From Tetramitus jugosus (lineage: Eukaryota; Protista; Heterolobosea): a DNA stretch of 64,000 nucleotides. Numbering within the stretch: position 1 is the stretch's first letter; every line of letters starts with the position of its first letter. Below, one piece after another: positions 8,658 to 34,901 of the stretch. Location: contig OW569381.1 of the NCBI GenBank assembly GCA_937625935.1, positions 310,001-374,000 of the forward strand, read 5' to 3'. The position numbers and the translations under genes were made by a program. The notes beneath the pieces are model-generated. The model was not told the origin of the DNA, ran no database searches, and saw only the letters and a program-made list of their open reading frames with translations.

Positions 8658-10892
8658 TTATGCTGCGAAATTGAGATCAACACTGATAATCTGGATTTCA
8701 TTCAGTGGGACGTTACCACGGTTCACATGCACACGTTCAATGGTTTGAACAACATCTTGTCCTCTGATAACTTCACCAAACAGAGTATGCTTGTTATCTA
8801 ACCATGGTGTTGCAGCAGTTGTAATAAAGAATTGACTGCCGTTTGTATTCGGTCCAGCATTTGCCATGCTGACCTTGAAGGGAGTATCGTGGTGCAAAGA
8901 AGGGTGGAACTCATCTTCAAAGTCTCTGCCCCAACAACTTCTTCCTCCAGTACCGTCTCCTTCTGGATCACCAGTTTGAATCATGAAGCCCTTGATGACA
9001 CGATGGAAGATTACACCATTGTAATAACCATCTTGCGATAGACGAGTAAAATTCTCCACTGTCTTGGGACACTTGCTCTTGAATAGTTGAACAAAGATGT
9101 CTCCATATGTGGTGTGTATGATGGCTGTGTCTGCGAGCTTACTCTTCAGTGCCATGTTTGTCGGTATATTTAATGCTGCAACTTCCATGTCTTCCTTGGA
9201 TGGTCTCTCATTGAAAATATCTCGACTCATGCTCGTATCATCACTTGATGGCTCCCTCCTAGAGAAGGAGAAGAATCGGTTCTTCTTGAATGCACAGCAG
9301 AATATAGTAGGATCAATGTTCTCCACTTTCGCGTTCGGTCCCAGTTTCGCTAACTCAACACGGCTAATTTTCAAAGCACCCTGAAAGAGTGAAAGACCTA
9401 AAAATCGCTCAGTCAACTCCACCTTACCCAGCAGTCTCTCAATCTTGCTTGTTTCGATATTGACAACTTTAATACCGAGCATCGTTGGATAAATGACGAA
9501 ACTGCCACTGTCATCGAATAGTACATTAGAACAAGGAGCGACCAACTTATGGTTGACATTATCAAATATTACGTCAAGTTGCTTTTCCATTTCCTTTTCA
9601 ATTGCCATTCTTCTTCCAAAATCAATATTCTCCAAAACGAATTCAGAATTTTGAGATTGCTGCACTTTGGACAATTGAGTTAATGACTCATCGATAACAA
9701 GAATTTGTTTTCCTGTTTCGTAGTCAAACACGCGAACAAACCGATCTCTACCCATGATAGCAAACTTTGTTCCATCTTTGCTTATTGAAAGCGAAATTGG
9801 GTATGTCTTGTTTTTCATGAGTTCGTACAGATCAGTTTCAGTCTTGTATTTAAATTGCACATTGGATGGTATCTTGCCTGTTAACAGATCCCAATATTCA
9901 ATATTACCTTTCCGATCAATTGATATCACTGCATCCTTCTCCTCATTGTACTTGATGTGCAATATTCGATTATTATTGAACGTAGAGTGAATTGATTTGA
10001 AGCAACAAAGTGGTGAATCAATGTCCAAATCTCTGTCAATCAGATCATAGATTCTAATCTCATTCAACGTGATATCACACACTGCAAGCAACGGCTTTCT
10101 TGCACTGCCTTGTTTCTGAACCAAGAACTCGACCAAATAGGGTCTGAATGGCGAGCTGCCATCATCATTCTTAAACTTGAAAACATTGATCATATCGAAC
10201 GACACAACATCAAACAACTTGATTGTGAAATCAAATGGACTACAACTACACATGAGTTTACCATCCAACGAACAAGCAATCGAATAAATTGGCTCCGTAT
10301 GTGCCTTGAACTCCTTCACAAACTGTATTTGATGCTGCGTTGTCTTTTTCCAAAATTTAATTTCACCATCCTTGGACGCAGTAATCACAAAATGAGTGTG
10401 TGGTGTGACCATTGTGTGCGTCACGTGATCCTTGTGCATAAAACTCCACTCGTACATGTGAGCACTCGGTAAATGATCCAAATAGAGTTGATTCATATCA
10501 ACACTGATCGATTCCACAGGTTTTACATGTTCTTTCTCCACTTTCAATTTCTCTTTTGTTTCCTCTGTTGTTGTTCCTGATTCTTCCTTGTTTTGATGAT
10601 GATCATGCTTTGCTTCTTCGACTACTGCTACTGAATTAGGTCTAGGAGGACCATATGCCTCATCATCACTCTCATCATCATCGTCATCTTCACTATCACT
10701 CTCATGTGGTGCAGCACCACTCACACTCTTACTATTGTTGTTGTTGTCGTCGTTTTGGATTGGTGGTGATGAAGTAGTGGTTGCAGTGGGTTGAGGAGGT
10801 CGAGGTGGTCCATAAGAATCATCATCTGATGAATCACTACTGTCATCCTCATTGTGAGCAGGGGGCCTACTTTGTTCATGTGATCGCTTCAT
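8658..10892 (-). CDS. PPWD1: WD40 + cyclophilin peptidyl-prolyl isomerase (PPWD1/CYP71)
   Basis: [17 protein letters not shown]; [12 protein letters not shown]; cyclophilin [22 protein letters not shown] and [18 protein letters not shown]; likely ATG at 10892 (MKRSHEQ). Confidence 0.95.
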
Positions 10893-19032: not shown

Positions 19033-22000
19033 TCAAAAAAGGTCTTCATGTTTGCTTTCATTTCTGTTTGTTTCTTCTTTTCCTGTTGGAATCCAGAGTA
19101 GCACAGTACCGAGAGAAGCTGAAAGGCCAATCATTGCAGCCTTGTATCTGTCACTGATACTGTTGCGAATAATATTGTTGTTGTCTCCTGGAACATAAAC
19201 AGTATCATTGCATGAAGAGTATTGACATCCAATCCACACTCTATCGACATAGACTAGGAGTTCTTGTTGTTGGCTGGCTGGATTAGAATCTAACAAGCTT
19301 TGACCCAGTAATATTGAGCTACCAAGCATGAGAGAGCTCATGTTAGCTACTGGAATATCTGGAGTAAAGCTGACATGACAAAGGACAGAAGCATGACTCT
19401 TCAATTGAACGTCAATTCTCCAAGGTTGAGTGTATTCAACTATTGATTGAACCGTTGTTGGCTTGACTGCTTCTGATTCGTCATTGTTGTTCAAGCTTTC
19501 CATCTCGGGTCTCACCAATTTCACAATCATGTTGTATGCAAAGCCAGTTTCGAAAGAACAATCAGATTGAACTGACATTTCCTTTTGATTCTCTCCCAAT
19601 TTGTAAACCAAGTTGAGAGATTTTTTACCATCCATACCATTGGTAATAGCACCAAATATATGCGCTTGAGTTTCAAAGTTGGACATCCAAACTTCTAACA
19701 AATTACCAACACCATAACCAACCACAAGCTCTACATTGACTTGTCTATCCTTTCCAGTTAGTACAGCATTGTTGACCATTACTGCACTTCTGGTTAGATC
19801 ATTATTCGGCAAGACGGATGTTAAATTGACCAAAGATCGTCCTGTTCTTTCATCGTACTGAACCCACTCAATGTTTTGTGGAAGTCCAAATGATGATCGA
19901 TTCACTGAAAGGAGATCACTTACAGAATCATCAAAAGTATCATAGAACGTCTGCGATCGGGCATCCACAAAATACAAGAAGGCTTGTTCTTGTTGAGAAG
20001 TGAATTCCTCTCCCTCTACAATAGTGGAAACCAATACAACAGAGTCTTGTTGAATCTTGTCAAACTTGGGCATTGGACAGTCAATGTGATTAGAGCCAAT
20101 GTAGGTCGATGAGATTTGAATTTCTTGTTGTGTTCCGGTCTCATTCAATTGCTTAAATACACAAACAATTGTACTGGTGGGATTATAGTAAGGAGCCATA
20201 ATCTTGACAGTGTCTCCTTGGTAGGCGGTTGTTGGATAGATTCTGCTTATCTCAGTTCTGTAGACGACAATAGAAATTCCAGCAAGCATTCCAAATGCGG
20301 TAGATGTTGGTCCACCAGCCACATTGATCTTTACCTGGAACTCCGCATAACCGATATTGTCGGGAAGTGTGACAAGAGGCACGAAGCATGCGTCGCCAGA
20401 TGTTTCCATTTCGACACAATTGACCAAGTTCTGTTCGACAGTGATATCATACTCTTTGCTGTATAACACAACAGTAGATACTCCATTGAACATCAAATAT
20501 TGTCCCTGGAGTCCGATGGTGGTTTCTTGCTTGTGAATTGACAAATAAGAGGGCGAGACTGTTTGAATAGTTGGCGTCCAAGATCCTAACAGAGTAATAG
20601 ACCTTCCTTTCAGATCTCTTGGATATGGAATGTAGACGGGAGTTAATACTTCAACTGTTCTACTGATAACCATCAAGTGTTGCATGTGAGGATCATCCAG
20701 ATAGATAAACATGTCAGATTCTATCTTTGAGAAGCCAAAGAAGCCTCCAAATATTTCCACGGAGGAAACAAGAGCACCAGAGCTTCTTACTCTATAGATC
20801 ATAGATCGAGAATTGACAAAGAGCCTACCATTAGCGTACATGAGACCTTGCAAGTCGGTAATCAATGGGAACTGATTAAAGGTCGCGAAACTGGAGAAGA
20901 TACCATCTAGATTAATCATCACAATACATGTTTGACCTTCCCCATTCGTTGCGAGCACATAAATGTTGTTGTTCTCATCTCTTGTTACATAGCGAGTGTC
21001 ATTGGCTCCAGGAATAATAGAGAAATCGCCAGTAGAATGCAAGGTTTCATTTCTGTGCAGTAGGTCTAAGATATGAACCTTAATCTGAACCGAGAGAGAA
21101 ACGATTGTGATTTGCGTGGCACTATCTACAAAGACTGTGGTCGAATCAGCCACTTCAATTTCGAATGATTGGATGAATTGAGGAATAATGGATGATCCTG
21201 AATGTTCGATCTTGTAGATACCTCCATTCATAAAGAGCATAAAAACATTGGAGTATTGGTTATACACGACCTTGGAGGCTGTAGGAATAACATATGAAGA
21301 GACAATCTTTCCGCAAGAATTGTCAGCTATGGCAATAATTTGATCACCACCTTCATCAAAGGTCGAAACCATGATGTATGTTTCCGCACAGATATCATCT
21401 TGAGCTTCACAATCAGCACCAGTATATCCAGATTGGCAGACGCAAGTGTCTGGTTGAACACAAGTACCATTTCCAGAGCAAGAAGAACTATTTGATGCAG
21501 GAATTGAATAACAAGTTGGAATCTCACAATTTGATCCAGTCCAACCAGGAGCACAACCAGTACAAGCATTTGGTTCTGAACACTCACCCCGTCCACTACA
21601 CACTGTAGGATCAACTGCACTAATACCATCACAGGTTGGATGTTGACACTTATCGCCCGAGTATCCATTTAGGCAGCTGCATCTGTCAGGACCGATACAG
21701 CTTCCGTGGTCAGAGCATGCTCCACCAGTTTCTTCGATACCGAAGCATACATTCACATCACAATTTCCACCTGTTTTGCCATAGGTACAATTACAAACAT
21801 CTGGGGCTGTACAAGTTCCTTCATTTGAGCAAACTTGTGGATAAATGGCTTCTGTTGAGTAACATATTGGAACAGCACAATCAAATCCAGAGTATCCTTC
21901 AGTACAATTACATCTATTTGGTCCATAGCACGTACCATGACCATTACAGACATCGTTGTCAGTTTGATTGAGGCCGAAACATACATTCTCCTCGCAATTA

Positions 22001-25000
22001 ATTCCAGTTCTGCCGACGAAGCAGTCACATGTATCAGGTAAAACACAGAAACCATTTCCAGAACAGACATTTCGTTTGGTTGATCTAACTCCAAAACAAG
22101 TTGGGATGCTACAGTCCATGCCTTCATACTTGGATGTACAGTTACACTTGTTAGGCTCATAGCAGTCACCATTTCCAGAACAAACTTCTAATTCTGTAGA
22201 ATTGACCTCGAAACAACTAGGATAGAAACATTCTAATCCAGAGTATCCGTACTTACAATCGCAGTCATTTGGTGATAGACAAGTGCCGTGACCTGAACAC
22301 ACATGAGTGGTATCATTTGAGAGTTTTCCGTAGCATATCGACAACTGACATTGAGCGCCAGCGTATCCGTCATCACACGTGCAGGAATTAGGTCCCGAAC
22401 ACATACCATGACCAGAACACACAGTAGGATCATTGTCTAGTTTTCCATAACAATTACTATATTCGCAATCGGTACCATTGTAACCCGGTGAACAGGTACA
22501 TTGATCCGGCAAATCACATCTTCCTCTTCCATGGCATATCTGTGTGGAATTGTACTCGAGAACACCATTACAAATATTTTGTTCGCACTCCAAGCCTCCA
22601 TAGCCCTTTTGACAAGCACATAAATCAACATTTAGACAATTTCCACGTCCCCTATCTGCATTACAAGCTGGAGGATCAGTCGTCGAGTTCTTTCCAAAAC
22701 AAACCAGTGGAACACACTCGCCATTTTCGAAATGTGTCATACAAGTACAATTGTTGTAGTCAATACAAGAACCATTTCTTCCATAGTTACAAACGGCTGG
22801 ATCAATGGCTGTCCTATTGAAACAGATTGGCGTAGAACAATATTGATCAGTGAAACCAGTCTTACATGAACATTTGTTCGGACTTGTACACGAGCCGTGA
22901 CCTGAACAAGCTAATCTAGAATCAACAGTTAAATTATTTGTTGCTTGAGGAAGTTGGAGAATGGATTCAATACCTGTTACTCTATCGACAAACCGAGAGT
23001 AACAGACAGGAGCACTGCAATTTCCTCCTGTGTAACCAGGTTGAGGAGTATTGAAACATAGACAATTATCCGGAGTGAAGCAGAATCCTTTTCCACTGCA
23101 AACCAATGGATCAGAAGTATTACGACCATAGCAAACAGTATGTTCACAGTTTGATCCGACATATCCTGGATCACATGTACAGTTTCCTGGAGCAACACAA
23201 CGACCATGACCTGAACAGACTTTAGAATCCACCGAAGCAACACCAAAACAGGCGTCATATTGACACACATCTCCTAAGTATTGTCCTCCAGTACAAACAC
23301 AAGTATCCAAGTACTTGCATTCACCGTGACCACTGCAAACAGTTGGATCAGTAGCATTGACTCCATTACAGGATGTAAACTCACAATTCAAACCAGAGAA
23401 GCCATTCTTACAAACACAAGTATCCCAACCCACACATGTTCCATTTCCTGAGCACACGTCTGAGTCGTCTTGAAGTACGTTGAAACAAGTTGTTCCATTG
23501 AACAATGTCAAAGAATGGAAGCGACCCGCCGCCACAAATTGACTGGATCTACGAGTATAGTTTCCGACTTGAACAGGCACTGAATGAGAATAAGTATTAT
23601 TGACTCCTAACTGTCCATTGATGTTATAGCCCCAACCAAATAGTAATCCATCATCGGATAGAGCTAGCATGAATCCGGAACTTCCACCAGTTAACTTCAC
23701 AATAGTGTGGTTCACGACCGCTCCAACCACCTGCTTTGGTGTTGGACTATCAATGTATGTTCCGGAACCCAATTGACCCACGTCATTGGCACCCCAACAA
23801 AACACTTTACCATACTTTGTGAGAGCACAAGAGAAGAATTCTCCTCCGGAAACTTCGACAATAAGTTGATCTTCGAGACCTAGCACCTTCTGGGGAATTA
23901 AACTGAAGGTTGAGGAGGTTGTTCCATCACCCAGCTGTCCTCTTGAATTATCTCCCCATCCATAAACTATTCCATCAATCGAAAGGGCAAGAGAGTGGTA
24001 TGCTCCGGCAAAAGAAGTTGCCGCCTTCTTTATCGAGAAGATGCTCATGACTCGAATTGGTCGATACTTGGACTTTGAGGTACTAGTTGTTCCATCTCCC
24101 AATTGCGCATGCTCGTTTCCTCCCCAAGCATAGATTTCTCCAATTGAAGTGACAGCGAGGCAGTGACCAAGACCACAGGAAACTTGGATAACTTGAAGAT
24201 TCGCTAATCCTGTAATGACAGTAGGGGTGGTTCTTTGTCCTCCCGAATTGCCTAATCCCAACTGACCATAAACGTTACTGCCCCACGAGTAAGTAGAGTA
24301 GTTGCTGTCGATAGCCACAGCAAATGAATAACCCGCAGTGATGGTAGAGATATTTCCAGACACTTTGTTCAGGACAGGAATACGAGCATTGTTGGTCGTT
24401 CCATCTCCCAGTTGCCCTTGATCATTGATACCAAAGGCATACACATCGTTAGTAGTAGAAATAGCGAATGAGAAGGATAGACCAGATGCTAGATATCTCA
24501 TTGGCTTGCGATCAATTGTAGAAGCTCGTCCCTTAATCAGTACACGACTATCCACAATACCACCATCACCTAACTGAGACACTTGATCCTGACCTGTACC
24601 GTACATGTAACCAAATGATTGATCCTCGCAATCAACTCCTCTCCATTGAGGATAACACACACATGTATTGTTTGGCAAGCACTGTCCGTGACCACTACAG
24701 ATCATCGGATCTGTGCTATTTCTTCCATTACAGGCAACAACACTGCAATCACGGTATTGGAAGCTAGGAGCACATTGGCATACGTCATTGGCGATACAAA
24801 CACCTCTTGAAGAGCAAACATTCTCATCATCGGAAAGGAATCCAAAGCAAGCTGTTGCATTGTACAAAAAGGCTGTATGGGTTCTTCCAGGAGCAATCGA
24901 TATAATATATCTGTCACGATAAGTATTCAGTACTTTGACTGCAGAGTTTCTTTGACTGAACGAGTTATCTCCCAATTGACCATAAGTATTACTACCCCAT

Positions 25001-28000
25001 GAATGGGCTGCTCCCTCTCTGCTCAATACAAATGCACTATCACGTCCTCCATAAACAGTTCTCGGATTGGTAATGTTTGTGACAACTCTTTGGGGAGTTG
25101 GTTTGTACTGAACAAGAGTTGAATTGTCACCTAGTTGTCCAAAGAACGCCCCTCCCCACGCATAGACTCCATTGTCTAGCGACACCATGTAGGTATTGTC
25201 CGATGAGCCGACAGCAGAGATGGCAATCTTGCCTCTAATGGCAGGAGGTGAGACCTCTGTTGGAGAATACTTGTTAAATGTTGAGCCATCTCCCAATTGA
25301 CCATAAGAATTACTACCCCATGCATACAATACTCCAAAAGGACCAATAGCAAGAGAATGCCTGTATCCGGCAGAAATAAAAGCGATAGGAATGTTGTCAA
25401 TGAGTCCATCTCCTACACGCACAGGCAAGACTTGAATTCTATTGGAGCCATCTCCCAACTGACCATCTACATTGTTACCCCAGCCATAGATTGTACCAGT
25501 TTCACTCAGAGCGAGCGTGTGGAATGCACCACATGCAACATTGATGATGGTTTCGTTGGCAATGACGCCTAGAACTCGGGTTGGCAGAGGAACATTTTGG
25601 AACGAATAATCTCCATTGCCTACTTGGCCATAATAGTTACTGCCCCAAGCGTAAACCTGTCCATGTTCGTCAACTGCCGCTCCGTGACTATTACCGGCAC
25701 AAACAGCGACAATCTTGGTCTGTATTCCGACTACAGCAACAGGAGTCGATCGATCAATCGTAGAATTATCACCCAATTGAGATGCATCATTCACTCCCCA
25801 ACCGTACATTTGACCTGTGGTCGATACAGCAATAGAAAAGTCTATTCCTGATGCAATACCAGACATTGCCTTACCAGTTATCAAACCTCCGACAGATGTT
25901 GGAAGAGTCTGAGTGAAGGTATAGCCATCTCCAAGCTGAGATTTACTGTCATCACCGAGAGAATACACGTATCCGGACACGACAGTTTCACATTGATCAC
26001 CACGATATCCAGGCTTACAGATACATGCGTCAGCGGCGATGCAAAATCCTCTACCTGAGCACACTAGTGGATCTGTTCCATTGCGACCAAAACAATTGTA
26101 GCTGCTGCAATCATCTGCATTATAGAATGGGAAACATTGACAAGTGTCTTGTGCAATACATTGTCCTTTGGAGGAACACACTGAGGGATCTTCGACAAAC
26201 TTTCCGAAACAGGTTGTTCCATTAAGGAGGAACAAAGAGAAAGTATTACCAGCAGCTACATCAACTGCATAGGTCAGAGTATAAGGATTGACAACAGTCA
26301 CAGGCTTTGATACCGAGGTGATATTGTAACTGCCATTACCGAGCTCGCCGTAATAGTTGTCTCCCCAAGAGTATGTAGTAGTGTTTTCGCTCAATGCCAA
26401 AACAAAGTTTCCTCCGGCACTTAATGTACTGATTCTATTGTTGGCAGGAAGTCCAAGCACTGCTACAGGATTCAGTTTGTCTACTAAAGTTCCGTCTCCC
26501 AATTGACCATTGCTATTTGCTCCCCAGGAGAAAACAGCACCATCAGCAGTCAAACAGGTCGAAAAGTACATTCCTGCTGCCACAGATTTGACAGTTCTTC
26601 CAAACAACAGTCCGGCAACTTGAACAGGCAAAATTTTCATTGTTGTGGTTGTATCTCCCAATTGGCCTCGGTTGTTCATACCCCAATTGTACACTGTTCC
26701 GTCACTTCCGAGAGCAATGGAATGATAGGCACCCGAAGAAATTGACACAATTTTCTTGTCAGAAAGAAGACCTCCGACTGTTACCGGCAGGAGTCTATTC
26801 GTTTGGCTATTGTCTCCTAGTTCTCCATCTAAATTGTATCCCCAGGTGTATATTACTCCTGTATCAGCGAGAGCGAGCGAGTGATAGTATCCGCAAGAAA
26901 TTGCCACAATGGTGTGTCCTGAAAGTGCAGAAACTTGAACTGGAGTCCAAGAAGAGGATGTACTATTGATTCCCAATTGACCATATCGATTGTCTCCCCA
27001 ACTGTACACATTACCCGAAATGTCGAGTGCCATAGCATGAGAGAAACCGCCACACAAGCCTACTATGTTTTTAGCTTTTAGAGATGGAATCTGAACAGGT
27101 AAACTGCGGTTTTGATTCGTTCCATCACCCAACTGTCCATATTGGTTGTTACCAACTCCGTAAACAGTTCCATCAACCGATCGAAGCAGAGTGTACTTGT
27201 AAGCTCCCACAACCAAGTGCATTGGGATTCCCATAAAGAGACGAGCTTGAACTACAGTTGGCTGAATACCAATATTTCTACTACCCAATTGAGAGTCGGA
27301 ATCATCACCAGATGTGAAGACAAAGCCATAGTTGGATACTTGACAGTTGTTCCCACTGTATCCTTGTCTGCAAACGCAGGTATCCAAGGAAATGCAACGA
27401 CCATGACCTGAACATACATTTGGATCTGTGCCATTCTTTCCATAGCAAATGGAAACACTGCAGTCAGGTCCAGTATAGTTGGGTTGGCACGAACAGGTGT
27501 CAGTTGCAGTACAGTTGCCATGCCACGAGCAAACTGTAGGATCATCATATAGAATTCCAAAACAGGCCGTACCGGCATACAAATAAAGAGAATGAGTTTT
27601 TCCGGCAGATACAGACGTAATGTATCTCTGCGGTTTGGTGTTCGTGACGGCGACTGGAGTCTTTCGGGGATCAATAAATGTTCCATCTCCCAATTGACCT
27701 TTTACGTTCTCTCCCCAAGCAAACGCCGTTCCGTTCGTATTGAAGGCTACGGCAAAGTTACCTGCGGTACCAGCTACGAGGTTTGTCATGTTCACGATAG
27801 GATTCAAAGTTGGAAGTGGCTTGTTCACAATAGTGTTGTCACCAATATTACCCTTGCTGTTTAATCCCCACGAGTAAATGCTACCATCATTTGCCATTGC
27901 ATAGGTAGTGGAAGCTCCAGAGGAAATTGAGCGAATGCTCTTTCCAGCAACGATACCCAATACTGGGTAAGGCCTCACTCTACCGAGTATTTTGCCATCA

Positions 28001-31000
28001 CCTAATTGTCCTACTGAATTGTCACCCCAACTGAACATTGAGCCATCCTCGGCAAGAGCAACAGAATGAATACTACCTGCAGCAATATCAATGATTCTTT
28101 TGATGTTCAGTAATTGTTGGACTCTGTAAGCAGTGTTCCTTGATCCGGTTTTGGTTCCATCTCCCAGCTGTCCATTTGTGTTCAATCCCCACGTGTACAC
28201 ACGTCCGTCATCGGTAAGGGCCATCGAGTGAGATGAGCCACAGGCAATAGAGACGACAGTTTGGTTTACCAGACCCTTAACAGCAGTTGGTAAATAGTAG
28301 GAAACGAGATCTCCTGTACCTAGTTGTCCATAGGTATTCATACCCCAGGAGAACACTGCGCCTGAAGTATCGAGAGCCAGAGCATGAGTACTACAAGCTA
28401 CAATACGAGAAATGAACTTATCAGCAAGAATTTTTGCAGGGTAGTATCTGTTGACAGTTGTTCCATCTCCAAGTTGACCCTGACCGTTATAACCAAGGGC
28501 GAATACACCATCATTGAAGTTGACAGCAAAAGAGAAGCCATCTCCTGCGGCTGCAAAGTGGAACAATTGTCTGGAGAAGATACTCGATTGGCGAGGATAA
28601 TTCTGAGTCGAGAAAAAGCCATCACCCAGCTGCGAATACGTATCATCACCCGAGGCAAACAAGAACCTCTGATCGGCTGATTCACATTCAAGTCCAGAGT
28701 AGCCTGGTGAGCAAACACAGTTGTCCTTGTAGACACATCTTCCGTTACCGGAGCAAACTGATGGATCATCACCAGTAACATTAAAGCAGATTGCGATAGA
28801 ACAGTTTTGACCAGTGTAACCAGAGTCACAAATACATATATCGGGGCCCACACAGTCTCCTCTGAATGAACAAACACTTGGGTCATCGTCTGGAATGAAT
28901 GAACAGTATGTTGTGTTGTAAAGGAACACAGAGTGGGTGGATGCACCCGATACCGCGACAGCTACTCTGTTTGAAAACTTTCTAATGACTGGAGTTGGGC
29001 TATTCTTGAGAACGACAGTGTTATCTCCAATTTGCCCGTTTGTATTCTCTCCCCATCCAAAGGTAGTACCATTGGAAGAAGTTGCAAGGACATAATCGGA
29101 CCATGTTCCAGCAGAGAGAGATGTAATGTTATTCAATGTTGAGATTAGGACTGGAAAACGTTGCTGAGCAGTAGATCCAATACCAAGTTGACCTGTTATT
29201 TAATGTCAATAGATTGTTAGTTTAGAAATGAAAAATCACTCGGAGAAACGCTCCTTACAAAAAAAGTTAGACAAATTGTCCTTACCCTTGGTATTGTCAC
29301 CCCATACGTAAACTCTTCCGTCAGTCGTCACTGCATATGACGAGACGCGTCCCGCAGCGATTTTCGCTACCGATTGTCCAAAGAGAGCACCATTCACTCT
29401 TCGAGGATTTCTTTTGTTTACCAGTGTGGCGTCACCGAGTTGGCCAACGTTGTTATATCCCCATGAGTATACTTCTCCGTTTTCTCCAAGAGCCAACGAG
29501 TGGGAATCTCCAGCTGCAATAGAAACAATGTTCACATTTCCGAGCATTCCTCCAATGGAAGAATCGGAACCTACAGAAACTGCAGTGTACTGATACGATG
29601 TGGCTGTACCGTCTCCCAGCTGGCTTTGTGCATTATACCCCCACGAGAAGACAGTTCCGTTGGCAGTCAGAGCCAGGGAATGATATGAACCACAGGCAAC
29701 TTGGATAACTGGTTGATTGGCAGGAATGCCAACCACAAGTCGAGGAGTGTATGAGAAGTAGTAACTGGAACCTAAACCAAGTTGACCTGTTATTGTAGGA
29801 TAGTAACCAGAGGGACAACTGCAGGACGTTTCCGAACAAGCATATCCATAGTAGGAACATACTGTTGTAAATGAGAGAGTATTTACTCCCCAAGCCCAAA
29901 CTCTTCCATTCGAGTCAGCAGCTAGAGTATGTCCTGTACTGGAGCAAACACTGACAATCTTAGTTCCTGGAAGAATTCTAATTGGGCGATTTTGATTTGA
30001 TGTTGTTCCATCACCCAAAATGCCATAAATATTTTTTCCCCATGAATACAACTCATTGTCAGTTGTAATTGCGAACGATGCATCAACACCAGAGCTAATT
30101 AGTTTGGTATATTTCATGTATGTCAATGGATAGGCAGTCTGGACTGGGAGCCTTTGTGCATCATAGTAATCATCGCCCAATTGACCATACGAATTATCAC
30201 CGAGAGTAAAGGTTAAACCAAAGATTGGTTGCTCACAATTTGGACCAGTGTATTCACTGCTGCAAGAGCAAGAATCTACAGCAACACATGTTCCATGAGA
30301 GGAACAAACTTCAGAATCTGTTGAATTGAATCCAAAGCAACTATTGATGCTACAATCATCTCCATAGTAGCCAGGTTGACAATCACATGTATCTGTGTCT
30401 GTACAAACACCATGCCATGAACAAACATTAGGATCATCAGATAGAATTCCATAGCAAAAAGTGCCATTATACAGGAACATGGAATGAGTTGATCCTCCAG
30501 AAGCAGCAATAATCCTGCGAGAAGGATAAGTATTGACGACTGGCACAGGAGATGTTCTCTGGGTGGTAGTACCATCTCCCAGCTGACCATAAGAATTTAC
30601 TCCCCATCCATAGGCTGTTCCATTTGCACTGACAGCTAACGTGAAGGCACTCTCCTTACTCGTGGTGACGGATATGATTTGAACACCAACCAAACCCTTG
30701 ACCAAAGTTGGAACAATTCTTTGTGTAGTTGTACCATCTCCCAGCTGACCATTGGAATTCAGACCCCAGGAGTAAACAAGCCCATCACTTGTGACAGCAA
30801 AAGAACTCGTTACTCCAGCTGCAATATCTACCACAACTTTTCCAGCAAGAGCTCCTAATACCAGCATTGGAGTTCGTTTATCTGTCGTAGTGCTGTCACC
30901 TAGTTGACCATTGCCGTTAATTCCCCAGGCATACACTTCTCCATTAATTCCAAGAGCCAATGTATGATAGTTTCCTGACGAAATCTTGATAATGTTGACA

Positions 31001-34000
31001 CCGTTAATGATACCCAAAACTTGAGTAGGATTATAAATGTAAGAGTAGGTGCCATAGGAACCGATACCCACCTCTCCATCACGATTAAAACCAAAGGACC
31101 AAACTGTACCATTTGCTGTCATAACTGTTGTATGACCACGACCACAAGCAACATTGATAGGAAGCTGTGAGGCGGCGATACCAGACACAGCGACGGGAAC
31201 AGCGGAATATCGAGAGGAGGAACCACCGAGAGGTCCAAGATTTCCGTAATTACATCCACCGACAGGACAACCTGAAGACATATCTCCAAAGAAGGAACTA
31301 CCCCATCCTAGAATCACTCCTCGGTCACTGACTGCAAAGGAATGGAAACTTCCAGCACAGATATCTACAATGTTGTTTGTAGGAGGACGGAGTGAACTAA
31401 CAAGATATGGCTTTTGACGATCTGTTGTAGTGCCATCTCCAATAGTGGTTGCATAATTTCGTCCGTTGGTCATAACTGAACCATCAGTTGTTAGAACAAC
31501 TGAAAAATCACCTCCAGCCTGAACGTTTGAGACGAATCTTCGAGTCAATTGACCAGTCATCAACACAGGAGAGACAGTGTTGACCATATCATCATCTGCT
31601 AATTGGAAAACATTATTTTGACCAAGAGCATATGCCAAGCCGAACATTTCTAGTTCACAACTGGCTCCTGTGAAACCTTTTCTACATATGCAAGTATCCA
31701 AGGCGACACAACTTCCTCGAGATGAACAGACAGACTCAGATGTTGATGAGATATTGAAGCAGGTGAATGTGCTGCAATCTGGTCCAAAATATCCATCTTG
31801 GCAACTACAAGTGTCCATCAAGGTGCAGTTTCCATGATAGGAACATACACTAGGGTCGTCAGATGGGATTCCAAAGCAAGAATCTGTAATGTTGTAAAGA
31901 ATGAGAGAGTGTCCGTAACCTGTGGAAACAGCTACGGCTCTTCTGTTGGGATAATAAAGACTGTAGCTCTTTGGACTATTGGTTTGAGTGATAGTACCAT
32001 CTCCCAATTGCCCAAGACTGTTACTACCAAACACAAACGTGGTTGCATTAGCAGTTAAAACCATTACGTGAGTAGTCACATAAGAAGGATGGATCACGGC
32101 TCCGCTAACTCTTACAACTTGCTCATTGGCCAACAATCCTACCACTTTGGTAGGAGCAGATCTCTGAGTAACACTACCATCTCCCAGCTGCCCATATCCG
32201 TTATACCCCCATGAGTAAAGAACTCCGTCAGAAGTGACCGCGTAGGAGGATGCTTGACCTGCTGAAAGTGTGACTACCTTTTTTCCTGATAGCAAACCAG
32301 TAACTTGATAGGGTAGAAGCGAATTGGTGGCTGTTCCATCACCTATCTGATTGTATCCGTTATATCCAAATGAGTACACTGTTCCATCTGCAACTAAGGC
32401 CAATGTGTGATGTCCTCCAAGAGATATAACTGAAATTCGTTTTTTGTAAAGAACACCCGCTATGTACACCTGAGTAGGTGTCAGCTTGTTTGTGGTAGTA
32501 CTGTCTCCCAATTGCCCGTATGCGTTATAACCCCAGGTAAACATGGTACCATTGGCAATCAACGCAGCAGAGTGGTAATTACCACAACTGACTGCTACGA
32601 CTGTTTGATTGGCCAATAGACCTTGAACCATGAGAGGGACAGCTGAAAAGGAAGGACTTCCTGAGCCTTGACCCAATTGACCATAGGAGTTGTCTCCAAA
32701 GGCATACACTGTTCCATTTTTGTCCAAAGCAAGAGAGTGCAAATATCCAGCACATGAACCAACAATGTTGTTTGAAGGTAAAACTGGATAAGGTACTGAT
32801 CTTGCATTCCTGGTTCCATCACCCAAATTACCTTGGCTGTTAAAACCAAAAGAATACAATGTACCATTGGGAAGATTCACCAGAGAGAAGGATACTCCAG
32901 CAGCGATACGAGCGATAGGGACTCCTCTGAAAGCTGTGGCAAGGATCGGAACATATTGCGCCAGGGAAGTTCCTGTATTTAGGTCTCCCAATTGCCCATA
33001 GGTGTCATCACCGCTCGCATGTAAATATCCAACTATTGAATTTTGACACTGATCTCCATTGTATCCATCATAACAGATACAAGTTTCATTAGTCATACAC
33101 TGACCGTTACCTGAGCAAACTGTTGGATTTGAAGCATTCAATCCATAGCAAATGGGAATACTGCAATCAAATTCGGAGAATCCAGGATTACAAACGCAAG
33201 TGTCGGTGGCGACACAAGCTCCGTGAGCGGAACATACGTTGGCATCTTCTGCAAAAACAGAGTAACATGTTGTACCATTCACCATGAATAGAGCATGAGA
33301 CTCACCTGCAGATATAGTAGTAAATGTACTAGATGGGAATGGAGTACTTGTCTTGACAAGAGCTGCATTCGTCGTGACTGTAGTGCCAGCACCAAACATG
33401 CCATAAGTATTTTCTCCCAGAGCATAAACGGAAGAAGTATTAGTGATCATATAGACAGAGCTGGATGTGCAACCAGCATAGATCGTTGAGACAAACTTGA
33501 CTGCTGCAGGATAGATAACTTGAACAGGAGTACTCTTCATAACTACTGTACCATCTCCCAGCTGTCCATTAGAGTTCGATCCCCACGAGAAGAGAAGTCC
33601 GTCAATCGTAAGGGCATAAGAAGCCAAATTGTTTGCCGCAATAGAGACTGCGTACTTTCCTGTAAGCAATCCTTCAACCAGCATAGGAGCGGTGACCAAA
33701 TGTACACCGCTGTTACCATCTCCCAGCTGTCCAATGGTCGACGAACCCCATGCATAGACCGTTCCATCATTTGCAAGAGCCACAGTATGTAACTGTCCGC
33801 AAGCGAGAGAAACAATTGTGGTGTACATGATACTTAGAGTGACTCGTCTTGGAGTTTCTCTATTGATAGTGGTACTATCACCAATCTGACCACCTTGATT
33901 AGATCCCCAGGCATAGACTGCACCAGTGGAAGTCAATGCCATGGAGTGAACTTTTCCACAGTAGACTCCAACAGCGTTCGTTGGAATGGTACCAGCGGCA

Positions 34001-34901
34001 ACTGCTTTGGGGAGATAGGAACTTGTTTTGTCACCAACACCATAACCTAGCCAACCCCAATCGAGAGTTCCTTGAGTATTGGTTCCCCAAGTGTATACCG
34101 TACCGTTGGAATCGAGAGCAACGGAATGGTATGTGCAAGCAGCAATTGAAATAATTCTCTTGCCAGCCAACGCGCCACCAATTTGGGTGGGAAGATATTG
34201 GGTAGTCGTATCACCAGTACCAAGTTGACCTGTTATTTAACGTCAATAGATTGTTAGTTTCGATCGTTGGAAGTATGAAAAATACACAAAAAAAAACGAG
34301 ATACAAAAAATTTTCACTTACCATAACCGTTGTAGCCCCATGCATAGACGACTCCACTGTCAGTTAATGCGAGAGAGTATCTTGAACCTGCTGAAACTGC
34401 ATTAATTCCAAGAAGACCAAACCAAGAAGAAACACGAAAGAGTGAACTCTTCCATGTAGTAAAGCCATCTCCAAGTTGACCTGTCGTTTCATGTCAAAAC
34501 ATTGTTAGTTGCGAACTTGTCAGAAAATGAAATGAAAAAATTTTTCAGACATAAACTCACCATAATTGTTGAGACCACTCGAATACGAGTAGCCAATGTT
34601 CTGTAATTCACAATTGGAACCAGAATGACCTGCGAAGCAAGTGCACACATCATTTGCAATACAAAAACCATTGTTACTGCAAACACCAGCAGTTGTTGAA
34701 TCGATGCCAAAGCACGTGGTTGCTGCTGATGTGCTACCAACTACACGATCGTTTTTAATGAGTGAAGAAATGAGCGTTGGTTAGTATTCATTCAACTAAA
34801 ACATAAAGGCGAGTCCATGGAAAAGTTTCACACATACTGAGAGACACTATCAGAGCAACACTGACAATAATACAACACAGAAATAAATTATTCAATTTCA
34901 T
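19033..34901 (-). CDS. Giant (~5,170 aa) predicted type I membrane protein: signal peptide, EGF, 8 RCC1/BLIP-II propellers separated by EGF pairs, 17-EGF stalk, IPT/TIG-like region, TM. Exons 34901-34838, 34740-34561, 34480-34322, 34229-29286, 29192-19033
   Basis: Signal peptide MKLNNLFLCCIIVSVALIVSL; four phase-1 GT-AG introns, each with ACTAAC, join all exons in frame (15,507 nt); dozens of WGxNxxGQLGDGT repeats; CFG..VCSGxGxC..C.C..GYxGxxC EGFs; hydrophobic AAMIGLSASLGTVLLWIP near the end. Confidence 0.9.
29193..29285 (-). repeat. Intron 4 of the giant gene; its 3' end is a near-identical copy of intron 3
   Basis: 3'-terminal 31 nt AAACTAACAATCTATTGAC(A/G)TTAAATAACAG match 34230-34260 at 30/31, plus 12 identical exon nt. 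Confidence 0.85.
34230..34560 (-). repeat. Introns 3 (34321-34230) and 2 (34560-34481), homologous to intron 4, flanking a 159-nt exon that encodes one RCC1 repeat
   Basis: Same G|GT CAA CTT GG insertion point; intron 2 matches intron 4 at 25/30 nt at the 3' end. Confidence 0.85.

Follow-up and report, generated by a model that had tools for sequence, protein, structure and literature searches.

Probable copying of a spliceosomal intron between RCC1 repeats of one giant gene in Tetramitus jugosus

Introduction

The origin of new spliceosomal introns is still largely unsolved. Only about 14 unambiguous examples of intron transposition, and 3 of intron transfer, are counted in a 2012 review, and none has been demonstrated in vivo (PMC3443670). 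Intron transfer between paralogs by recombination is listed there for globin genes of Chironomus, for Aspergillus and for Mycosphaerella (PMC3443670).

Here we analyse a gene of Tetramitus jugosus located on the minus strand of the window, the whole stretch of 64,000 nucleotides under study. It codes for a giant surface protein with eight propellers made of RCC1 blades. A first-pass annotation of the letters noticed that three of its introns interrupt the same codon of different repeats. It proposed either that introns spread between repeats, by gene conversion or by an introner-like process, or that the gene produces combinatorial or chimeric propellers. We compare these introns with each other, with paralogs and relatives, with RNA contigs and with the rest of the genome.

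Results

Structure of the gene and its protein

The exons and introns are given in Table 1. The exon translations were searched against Pfam one by one, not as a joined coding sequence, and PF00415 was matched with E = 2.9e-49 and 1.6e-64, with PF25390 also above the cut-off. Exon 3 alone matches PF13540 (RCC1_2) with E = 9.5e-9. By these families the protein carries RCC1 repeats and an RCC1-like domain. Exons 3 and 4 have lengths that are multiples of 3 and are stop-free when read in phase 1; the 159 nt, 4,944 nt and phase 1-1 of the first reading were all recovered.

Nine paralogs start with the same signal-peptide exon, followed by intron 1. The rest of each is one giant ORF without interruption, and none of the blade junctions holds an intron.

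Table 1. Exons, introns and related sequence features of the gene, with positions in the window
Feature	Position	Strand	Description	Basis
Exon 1, coding part	34838..34901	-	64 nt; start codon and signal peptide; ends in phase 1	Sequence reading
Intron 1	34741..34837	-	97 nt; GTATGT...TACTAAC...TAG; outside the intron family	Sequence only
Exon 2	34561..34740	-	EGF-like module and first strand of propeller 1, ending ...S-G-L-N-N-Y-G	Translation
Intron 2	34481..34560	-	80 nt; phase 1; junction 1 of propeller 1	Removed exactly in X1 and X4 RNA contigs
Cassette copy, intron 2	34471..34509	-	More diverged: 24/29 in intron part, same 10 exon nt	
Exon 3	34322..34480	-	159 nt, one RCC1 blade; phase 1-1	Pfam RCC1_2; in RNA contigs
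Intron 3	34230..34321	-	92 nt; phase 1; junction 2 of propeller 1	Removed in X1, X2 and X4 RNA contigs
Cassette copy, intron 3	34218..34260	-	42/43 identical to the intron 4 copy	
Exon 4	29286..34229	-	4,944 nt; blades 2-7 of propeller 1, propellers 2 and 3, propeller 4 to junction 6, EGF pairs between	Translation; Pfam RCC1 and EGF
Cys-rich in-frame insert	29776..29874	-	Junction 3 of propeller 4; last 8 nt and GTCAACTTGGT match intron 3' ends	
Intron 4	29193..29285	-	93 nt; phase 1; junction 6 of propeller 4	Removed in X1, X2 and X4 RNA contigs
Cassette copy, intron 4	29181..29223	-	31 intron nt (branch point and acceptor) and 12 exon nt	
Exon 5	19033..29192	-	Rest of propeller 4, propellers 5-8, EGF stalk, C-terminal region, stop codon	ORF listing; translation

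Three introns of one family

As first claimed, introns 2, 3 and 4 (80, 92 and 93 nt) each lie in phase 1 within the Gly codon of N-x-x-G|Q-L-G. They are GT..AG introns with the donors GTGAGT, GTAAGT or GTAAGG, a CAG acceptor and an ACTAAC branch-point motif about 25 nt upstream of it. The first G of the Gly codon precedes each intron and the exon start GTCAACTTGG directly follows. Together with their exact removal in RNA, the GT..AG ends and the branch-point motif mark them as U2-type spliceosomal introns.

Introns 3 and 4 share a tract of 43 nt with one mismatch, which spans the intron 3' end and the exon start and which we call the cassette (Table 1). The expected number of matches in dinucleotide shuffles of the window is 0. 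The cassette is the longest non-simple repeat within the window, and among about 1,400 blade-junction pairs of the gene no other tract with one mismatch or none is as long; for exonic junction pairs, the longest such tract is 35 nt and the 95th percentile is 16. Intron 2 matches the cassette at 24/29 across its 3' part, where 25/30 had been claimed.

Strict local alignment scores are 30 for introns 3 and 4, and 21 for both intron 2 with 3 and intron 2 with 4, against a null of 8.9 +/- 1.3 (maximum 12) from 48 comparisons with unrelated introns. Introns 2, 3 and 4 form one sequence family. Furthermore, the 5' parts of introns 3 and 4 align at 43/48 with indels, with a score of 40 that none of 500 shuffles and none of 27 real-intron controls reached. 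Divergence between the two amounts to 1 mismatch in the 3' 31 nt, versus 5 in 48 plus several indels in the aligned 5' part. For the 5' part of intron 2, homology to introns 3 and 4 is indistinguishable from the null. Intron 1 was considered as a fourth member after a permissive global alignment hinted at some likeness, and was rejected with a strict local score of 9-12, within the null.

The near-identity of introns 3 and 4 (42/43) does stand amid diverged repeats, as first described, with flanks at 34-41%. The first 12 exon nt after these two introns are identical (12/12), the next 90 nt agree at 31 positions, and the last 90 nt upstream at 37. The copied segment begins exactly at the intron start, with no upstream exon identity carried along. 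Taking introns 2-4 together, the flanks are 34-48% identical at the nucleotide level and 12-34% at the protein level, and the blades on either side of the introns share 8 to 17 of 50 residues. The blades around introns 2 and 3 can be matched one to one with blades of the paralogs C24 and C43 and of L026, a contig of a related organism. Given that intron-less paralogs and the related organism have these blades too, the introns are younger than the exons that they separate.

The motif GGTCAACTTGG is found at just 2 of about 49 intron-less junctions. A Cys-rich in-frame insert in propeller 4 shares a 21-nt tract with intron 4. We considered it as an exonised intron and discarded the idea: it is kept in RNA contigs (X1 record 1, X4 record 12), and the protein is conserved there in L026 and P0243, which makes it coding sequence. 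The 8 intron-like nt before its GQLG may be due to chance or micro-conversion.

Paralogs, relatives and the direction of copying

The cassette is absent from all nine paralogs. The first-pass annotation had suggested checking intron presence among paralogs; with no junction intron and no cassette in any of them, the proposed chimeric propellers from recombination between paralogs are not supported.

Searches for homologues were dominated by bacterial RCC1 proteins, and only P0001, P0143 and P0243 were obtained as further relatives. Orthology comes from quick trees with SH-aLRT support only, which give (C43,(this gene,(P0001,P0243))) with values of 98/91/96. The two related organisms with the closest homologues are known from metagenome contigs only, and P0243 was seen as a protein.

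The L026 orthologue has an intron at exactly the codon and phase of intron 3, unrelated in sequence and without the cassette. Because of this shared position, intron 3 is considered the older one. As for the site of intron 4, it is read through in one frame on L026 and also read through in P0243; intron 4 is absent at the orthologous site in L026, P0243 and all nine paralogs. With this site empty in two relatives and nine paralogs, and the intron 3 site occupied, the best reading of intron 4 is a copy, made in this lineage, of the older intron 3, which is the probable donor copy. At the junction next to that of intron 3, intron 2 is a copy that is either older or partial. A less parsimonious alternative is that the ancestor shared by the relatives lost intron 4 and that the paralogs lost it as well.

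It is improbable, in our view, that introns were present anciently at many blade junctions and lost in all paralogs and, at junction 6 of propeller 4, in the relatives, with the three survivors kept alike by short-tract gene conversion. Blade junctions of relatives do carry introns: L027 has a phase 1 intron at N-S-Y-G|Q-F-G and a phase 0 intron after G-Q-L, and L026 has a phase 0 intron after G-Q-I. The sharp island of identity, including its 12 exon nt, resembles a conversion tract, and a second, exonic island of 35 nt lies between two other blades. However, the junction introns of the relatives are unrelated in sequence and some are 8 nt away in another phase, which points to independent gains rather than one old set. 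Such a history also needs losses in the ancestor of the relatives and in every paralog lineage, versus a single gain.

Constraint on the intron 3' end

Near-identity could also reflect purifying selection and not recency, if the 31 nt and the exon start were an element of splicing control, such as a stem at the acceptor or a site bound by some factor. The 3' part is indeed more conserved than the 5' part. In all three introns a TTGAC is complementary to the GTCAA of the exon start, and the minimum-energy folds contain this stem. However, dinucleotide shuffles fold just as stably (z from -1.2 to +2.2) and the three stems are identical, so that covariation is absent; we dropped the stem around the acceptor as evidence. 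Intron 2 is spliced despite differing at 5 of 29 positions, the orthologous L026 intron has nothing of the cassette, and no other intron of the genome contains it. A search of Rfam for an intron-hosted small RNA gave nothing at E <= 1, except one chance lncRNA match inside exon 4. Altogether we give a control function of this kind little credit.

Splicing in RNA

Removal of introns 2-4 is constitutive, with skips of exactly 80, 92 and 93 nt in contigs from up to three soil metatranscriptome studies (X1, X2 and X4), although a spliced contig cannot tell splicing from an intron-less strain. The intron 2 joint is found in RNA contigs of X1 and X4 (34478->34559). Exons 2, 3 and 4 are joined in two RNA contigs; X1 record 5 and X4 record 17 include exon 3 and cover exon 2 up to about 34729-34737, and the coverage by RNA contigs stops short of exon 1.

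We consider it very unlikely that the introns are a modular system in which any donor joins any downstream acceptor and propellers of varied composition result. With three phase 1 introns and the phase 1-1 exons 3 and 4, skipped forms would indeed stay in frame and in register. Nevertheless, no exon-skipping junction was seen in the assembled contigs of X1, X2 and X4, which drop rare variants, so that rare isoforms could escape detection. The three junctions that the first-pass annotation had named for a check of its proposal (34561->34229, 34561->29192 and 34322->29192) are not seen in these contigs, which carry only constitutive ones. From the blade map, a propeller of 7 blades would be cut to about 3 if exon 3 were joined to exon 5, and to about 2 if exon 2 were. 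The relatives have no intron 4, so the system would not be conserved.

Three odd joints (33165->33551, 33587->29050 and 32093->34260) have short sides and no GT..AG and lie within repeats. We took them as mapping noise.

The cassette outside the gene

The genome was searched with a pattern allowing 3 mismatches, with BLAST at E <= 10 and with a looser gapped pattern. The cassette has three copies in the 26.35-Mb genome, all of them in this one gene, and it is therefore neither a generic intron end, which the first-pass annotation had named as part of what would refute its proposal, nor a dispersed introner. The idea of intron propagation between repeats is supported, in that there is a gene-private family with a gained intron 4; an introner-like dispersed family is not, with three copies in one gene.

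In other organisms, a metagenome scan for the cassette gave two contigs with the same unrelated gene, which has no homologue in this genome. About 0.5 matches are expected by chance (a rough estimate), and the result was treated as such.

The least likely reading is that an introner-like mobile element landed three times in this gene by chance: near-identical introns at several sites are an introner hallmark (PMC3443670), but the three search modes give zero copies outside the gene, no terminal repeats or target-site duplications are visible at the introns, and the sole match of the metagenome scan is that unrelated gene.

Discussion

Overall, we consider it likely that introns 2-4 are ordinary, constitutive U2-type introns of a family private to this gene, intron 4 being a later copy of the older intron 3 and intron 2 an older or partial copy. 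These comparisons demonstrate that copying took place and, for intron 4, in which direction; for the mechanism, we infer the following. A copy of the whole length of intron 3 would have been placed at the equivalent G|GT-CAA-CTT-GG of another blade, 5 kb downstream. Afterwards, intron 4 would have gained several indels in its T-rich 5' half, with the 3' 31 nt barely changed. Since this 3' segment is less diverged than the 5' part, it is possible that it is under extra constraint or that a later short conversion took place there. Judged by the relatives, intron 4 would be the youngest of the three, and recently gained.

The route that we prefer is at the DNA level, through ectopic repair or short-tract gene conversion between blade junctions, that is, an 'intron transfer' between internal repeats. 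It would also have brought along the first 10-12 exon nt, and the 12 identical nt of downstream exon fit it better. Nearly as likely is that the excised intron was reverse-spliced into the transcript that it came from, before reverse transcription and recombination. This RNA route would better fit the exact 5' edge, without upstream co-conversion, than gene conversion does.

Copying into one and the same repeat codon accounts for the symmetrical phases, and these do not speak for a modular splicing system. As the locus shows, neither exon shuffling nor a splicing function is needed for symmetric phase 1-1 repeat exons to arise. The introns would be bystanders in an eight-propeller giant surface protein, not a device for variant propellers.

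A parallel event is seen in the related orthologue. On L026, a private intron lies in a Trp codon at junction 4 of propeller 1, and is absent from the T. jugosus gene. It is identical at 43 of 48 positions to intron 1 of its own gene, with a score of 58 versus a null of 16.7 +/- 4.2, and the sites of the two are non-homologous. With this independent case, intragenic intron copying looks recurrent in the clade. A bolder proposal, which we hold only tentatively and think rather doubtful, is that the clade has an active process that copies spliceosomal introns within the same gene or transcript, with two independent cases in orthologous giant genes. If true, and if acting in cis via reverse splicing, it would offer a natural system to catch spliceosomal intron transposition, a process proposed long ago, as it happens.

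The locus is a rare case of intron gain that is clean and well polarised: the orthologue has an intron at the site of the donor, and two relatives and nine paralogs lack the copy. To this are added the homology along the whole intron, the splicing of the copy in RNA and the parallel event in the related orthologue.

Among known systems, introners and introner-like elements (Micromonas, Aureococcus, fungi) are also families of spliceosomal introns with recognisable identity. They run to tens to thousands of copies over unrelated genes, whereas here there are three copies in one gene, with no dispersed copies and with neither terminal repeats or target-site duplications nor a stable fold. Tandem exon duplication, known from phase 1-1 extracellular modules in animals, is similar in that exon 3 is one repeat between homologous introns of the same phase. 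In contrast to it, the blades beside these introns are not recent duplicates of each other, which does not fit a tandem duplication of exon plus intron.

Intron transposition by reverse splicing is closer. As in that process, the new intron is homologous to a pre-existing intron of the same gene, its site is intron-less in relatives and paralogs, and from the start it has a functional donor, branch point and acceptor and an exact 5' edge. However, the first 12 exon nt are identical here as well, which precise insertion of RNA would not predict, and instead of an arbitrary site the intron has entered the homologous codon of another repeat.

Lastly, intron transfer in paralogs differs in that donor and recipient here are internal repeats of one gene, and in that the flanking homology is very low, at 34-41% of nucleotides. 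Downstream, 12/12 exon nt are identical, whereas the upstream exon shows no co-conversion. As in intron transfer, the intron has spread to the same position of a homologous sequence and some flanking exon would have been carried with it, and introns 2-4 share their position and phase 1 in the RCC1 blades.

Structure of the gene and its introns

The giant RCC1-EGF surface-protein gene lies on the minus strand and has five exons. Translated separately, these begin with a signal peptide (exon 1) and an EGF-like module (exon 2). Eight seven-bladed RCC1 propellers follow, with EGF pairs in between, and behind them come a long EGF stalk and the C-terminal region. Pfam backs the RCC1 and EGF assignments.

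Introns 2, 3 and 4 have GTGAGT, GTAAGT or GTAAGG as donors and an ACTAAC motif about 25 nt upstream of the CAG acceptor. They are followed directly by GTCAACTTGG. Each interrupts the Gly codon of N-x-x-G|Q-L-G behind its first base (phase 1), and a script found the phase 1 reading open in both exon 3 (159 nt) and exon 4 (4,944 nt). Reading and script thus agree with the first-pass annotation in every element of its description of these introns (sizes, phase, shared tract, exon lengths). On the blade map, intron 2 falls at junction 1 and intron 3 at junction 2 of propeller 1, and intron 4 at junction 6 of propeller 4. The sites are therefore equivalent per blade, not per propeller.

Introns sharing the cassette, in window coordinates
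Feature	Position	Strand	Length	Basis
Intron 2	34560..34481	-	80 nt	sequence reading and script check
Intron 3	34321..34230	-	92 nt	sequence reading and script check
Intron 4	29285..29193	-	93 nt	sequence reading and script check

A family of three introns

Introns 3 and 4 share a tract of 43 nt with 42 identities (34260..34218 against 29223..29181). Intron 2 matches this cassette of 3' intron tract and exon start at 24/29 positions in the intron part, plus 10 identical exon nucleotides. Shuffles of the window give an expectation of no such matches. The first global alignment of introns 3 and 4 suggested a sharp 44-nt island. Once gaps are admitted, their 5' parts align as well, at 43/48 identical positions and with several indels in T-rich stretches. 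This alignment scores 40, compared with 20.3 ± 4.6 for shuffles (0 of 500 reach 40) and with 19.5 ± 6.3 (at most 34.5) when unrelated real introns supply the 5' parts. Under strict local alignment, introns 3-4 score 30 and the pairs 2-3 and 2-4 score 21 each, against 8.9 ± 1.3 (maximum 12) in 48 comparisons with unrelated introns. Introns 2, 3 and 4 are therefore a sequence family of three members, in which introns 3 and 4 are homologous over their entire length. Intron 1, tried as a further member, scored within the unrelated-intron null.

The flanks are another matter. After 12 identical nucleotides, the exon starts behind introns 3 and 4 agree at only 31 of the following 90 nt, and the upstream exons at 37 of their last 90 nt; the protein flanks share 10/50 and 16/50 residues. 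The introns are far younger than the blades that they divide. Between introns 3 and 4, the 3' 31 nt hold 1 mismatch, compared with 5 in 48 plus indels in the 5' part. This difference is statistically not compelling, and may reflect splice-signal constraint, later conversion or faster slippage in the T-rich 5' half. One contig of X9, a run behaving like DNA, has small insertions (A; CC) at 34529 and 34547 in intron 2, which suggests strain or allele variation in its 5' half.

We searched the 26.35-Mb assembly (56 contigs) for the cassette with a pattern of the shared positions (up to 3 mismatches), with BLAST of intron 4 and its flanks (E <= 10) and with a looser gapped pattern (branch point, 8-40 nt, acceptor and exon start). 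All three agree that there is no copy in it beyond the three sites of this gene. Simple sequence aside, no repeat in the 64-kb window is longer than the cassette. The 3' ends of intron 1, in this gene and in the paralogs viewed, are quite unlike it. With three sites only and differing intron 1 ends, the cassette is not a generic intron 3' end found genome-wide. An introner-like process, in the sense of a dispersed mobile family, is likewise not supported, the three copies being confined to a single gene with no dispersal through the assembly.

An intron end in L024:149-184 and L025 (Ga0105054_10025565, Ga0209491_10030286) matches 18 nt of intron 2 (CTAACAATGTTTTGACAT). It belongs to an unrelated gene, of 1,516 codons, that another eukaryote carries. 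Since that gene has no homologue in the T. jugosus genome, we treat the match as chance, not as a cassette copy.

Splicing in metatranscriptomes

Contigs from three soil metatranscriptome studies (X1, X2 and X4), 95-100% identical to the window, omit exactly 93, 92 and 80 nt at introns 4, 3 and 2. Exons 2-3-4 are joined in X1 record 5 (2,237 nt) and X4 record 17 (605 nt), and exon 4 is joined to exon 5 in X1 record 1 and X2 record 6. In X9, intron 4 is spanned unspliced, with no differences.

It had also been proposed that exon skipping yields combinatorial propellers. The contigs of X1, X2 and X4 speak against this, with constitutive joins only and none of the junctions 34561->34229, 34561->29192 and 34322->29192. 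The RNA evidence consists of assembled contigs, which drop rare variants, so the data show dominance of the constitutive form, with room for rare isoforms, and not an absence of other forms. Going by the blade map, a transcript that ran from exon 2 or exon 3 straight into exon 5 would encode only two or three of a propeller's seven blades, an implausible product.

Paralogs, relatives and the origin of intron 4

Giant RCC1 ORFs form a family in this genome, the largest having 9,248 codons. We viewed nine paralogs, one each on contigs C22, C24, C28, C40 and C43 and four on C51. Eight consist of a signal-peptide exon, a single intron and an uninterrupted giant ORF, which reads through the equivalents of introns 2 and 3 and all later blade junctions. 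The C24 paralog (L014, C24:40566-45536) also reads through the intron-2 and intron-3 sites. Its one internal intron (phase 0, GTTAGT...CAATAG, oriented ~1430-1503) lies inside a propeller 1 blade, at a position intron-less in the other family members inspected. The C51 paralog starting at 249868 has a 1-nt frameshift in a W-G motif (...VYMGR*; L022:2885-2900, C51 ~255890), and is either a pseudogene or affected by an assembly error.

Two close homologues turned up in protein searches, both on JGI metagenome contigs. P0001, on L026 (Ga0606064_0553), is 50% identical to exon 4. P0243, a single 5,571-codon ORF, is 51% identical to the exon 5 start and 45% to P0001. A quick tree with paralogs gives (C43,(this gene,(P0001,P0243))), with SH-aLRT 98/91/96; a second one, equally quick, joins this gene to P0001 (SH-aLRT 99).

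At the intron-3 site, L026 has a 49-nt intron in the identical codon and phase (W-G-Y-N-N-Y-G|Q-L-G), unrelated in sequence. Near the intron-2 site, another unrelated intron lies 8 nt further downstream (after G-Q-I, phase 0). At the intron-4 site a single frame runs through on L026: the exon 4 end aligns to residues 39-98 of its translation and the exon 5 start to residues 100-125. The P0243 protein likewise reads through. L026 also has an in-frame TGA (L026:14006-14010) in the orthologous propeller 4, where the T. jugosus gene has Lys; sequencing error, pseudogene status or recoding of the stop could each account for it.

The pattern in paralogs and relatives is explained if intron 4 was gained once, on the branch leading to this genome. 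An ancestral intron 4 needs loss in the ancestor of P0001 and P0243 and more losses among paralogs. Because the orthologue has an intron there, the intron 3 position is older, which sets the direction from intron 3 to intron 4. Intron 4 is a spliced copy of intron 3, private to this lineage, and the idea that introns propagate between repeats is supported by the family alignments and by the intron-less site in relatives and paralogs.

Parallel copying in a relative

L026 has a further intron (L026:9999-10059) in a Trp codon at junction 4 of propeller 1, phase 2, absent from the T. jugosus gene and paralogs. Aligned to intron 1 of its own gene (L026:9189-9238), it agrees at 43/48 positions, with four indels. 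The pair scores 58, against 16.7 ± 4.2 for shuffles and 10-28 for other intron pairs of the gene. One site is the signal peptide/EGF module boundary and the other a blade junction, with homology no further than TG|G. This makes it an independent instance of copying within a gene, and two orthologous genes in two organisms thus each have a private intron copied from another of their own introns.

Furthermore, a different RCC1-EGF-GPS gene from a relative, on L027 (Ga0606088_0053), has junction introns of unrelated sequence, one in phase 0 after G-Q-L and one in phase 1 at N-S-Y-G|Q-F-G (L027:8990-9040 and 9995-10040). Introns therefore seem to land at blade junctions by preference. This gene has an apparent frameshift at ~9610.

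Mechanism of copying

For the copying of intron 3 to intron 4, a DNA route is slightly ahead of an RNA route at this locus, though the two are not separable. On the DNA route, one blade junction would have been changed by another through ectopic repair or short-tract conversion. In its favour, the first 12 exon nucleotides are identical, yet GGTCAACTTGG occurs at only 2 of ~49 intron-less junctions. Further short identity islands also exist between blades (35 nt, 25299 vs 24978). There, the later-propeller junctions 24962-25004 and 25283-25325 share a 35-nt tract with at most 1 mismatch (39/43 overall), an exonic tract that hints at short-tract conversion. Slightly behind comes reverse splicing into the gene's own transcript, followed by reverse transcription and recombination (as defined in PMC3443670). 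The exact 5' edge, the absence of upstream co-conversion and the linking of non-homologous sites on L026 favour it.

Speculatively, intron 2 might go back to an earlier copying event and have taken the place of an ancestral junction-1 intron like that on L026, or have arisen next to it. Lastly, propeller 4 has a 30-residue Cys-rich insert in its junction-3 loop (29776-29874, minus strand). Both relatives conserve it at the protein level, so it is a real mini-module. The 8 nt at its end (AATAACAG) match intron 3' ends, which may be micro-conversion or chance.

Comparison with known systems

The T. jugosus case does not match introners, having three copies in one gene. Nor does it match tandem exon duplication, because the flanks are old. 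Coghlan and Wolfe (2004) reportedly found a few cases in Caenorhabditis where a newly gained intron resembles another intron of its gene. The case fits "intron transposition" and "intron transfer" as used in PMC3443670, which counts 14 unambiguous events of the former and 3 of the latter, none demonstrated in vivo. What is unusual here is that the copy landed at the same codon of a different internal repeat.
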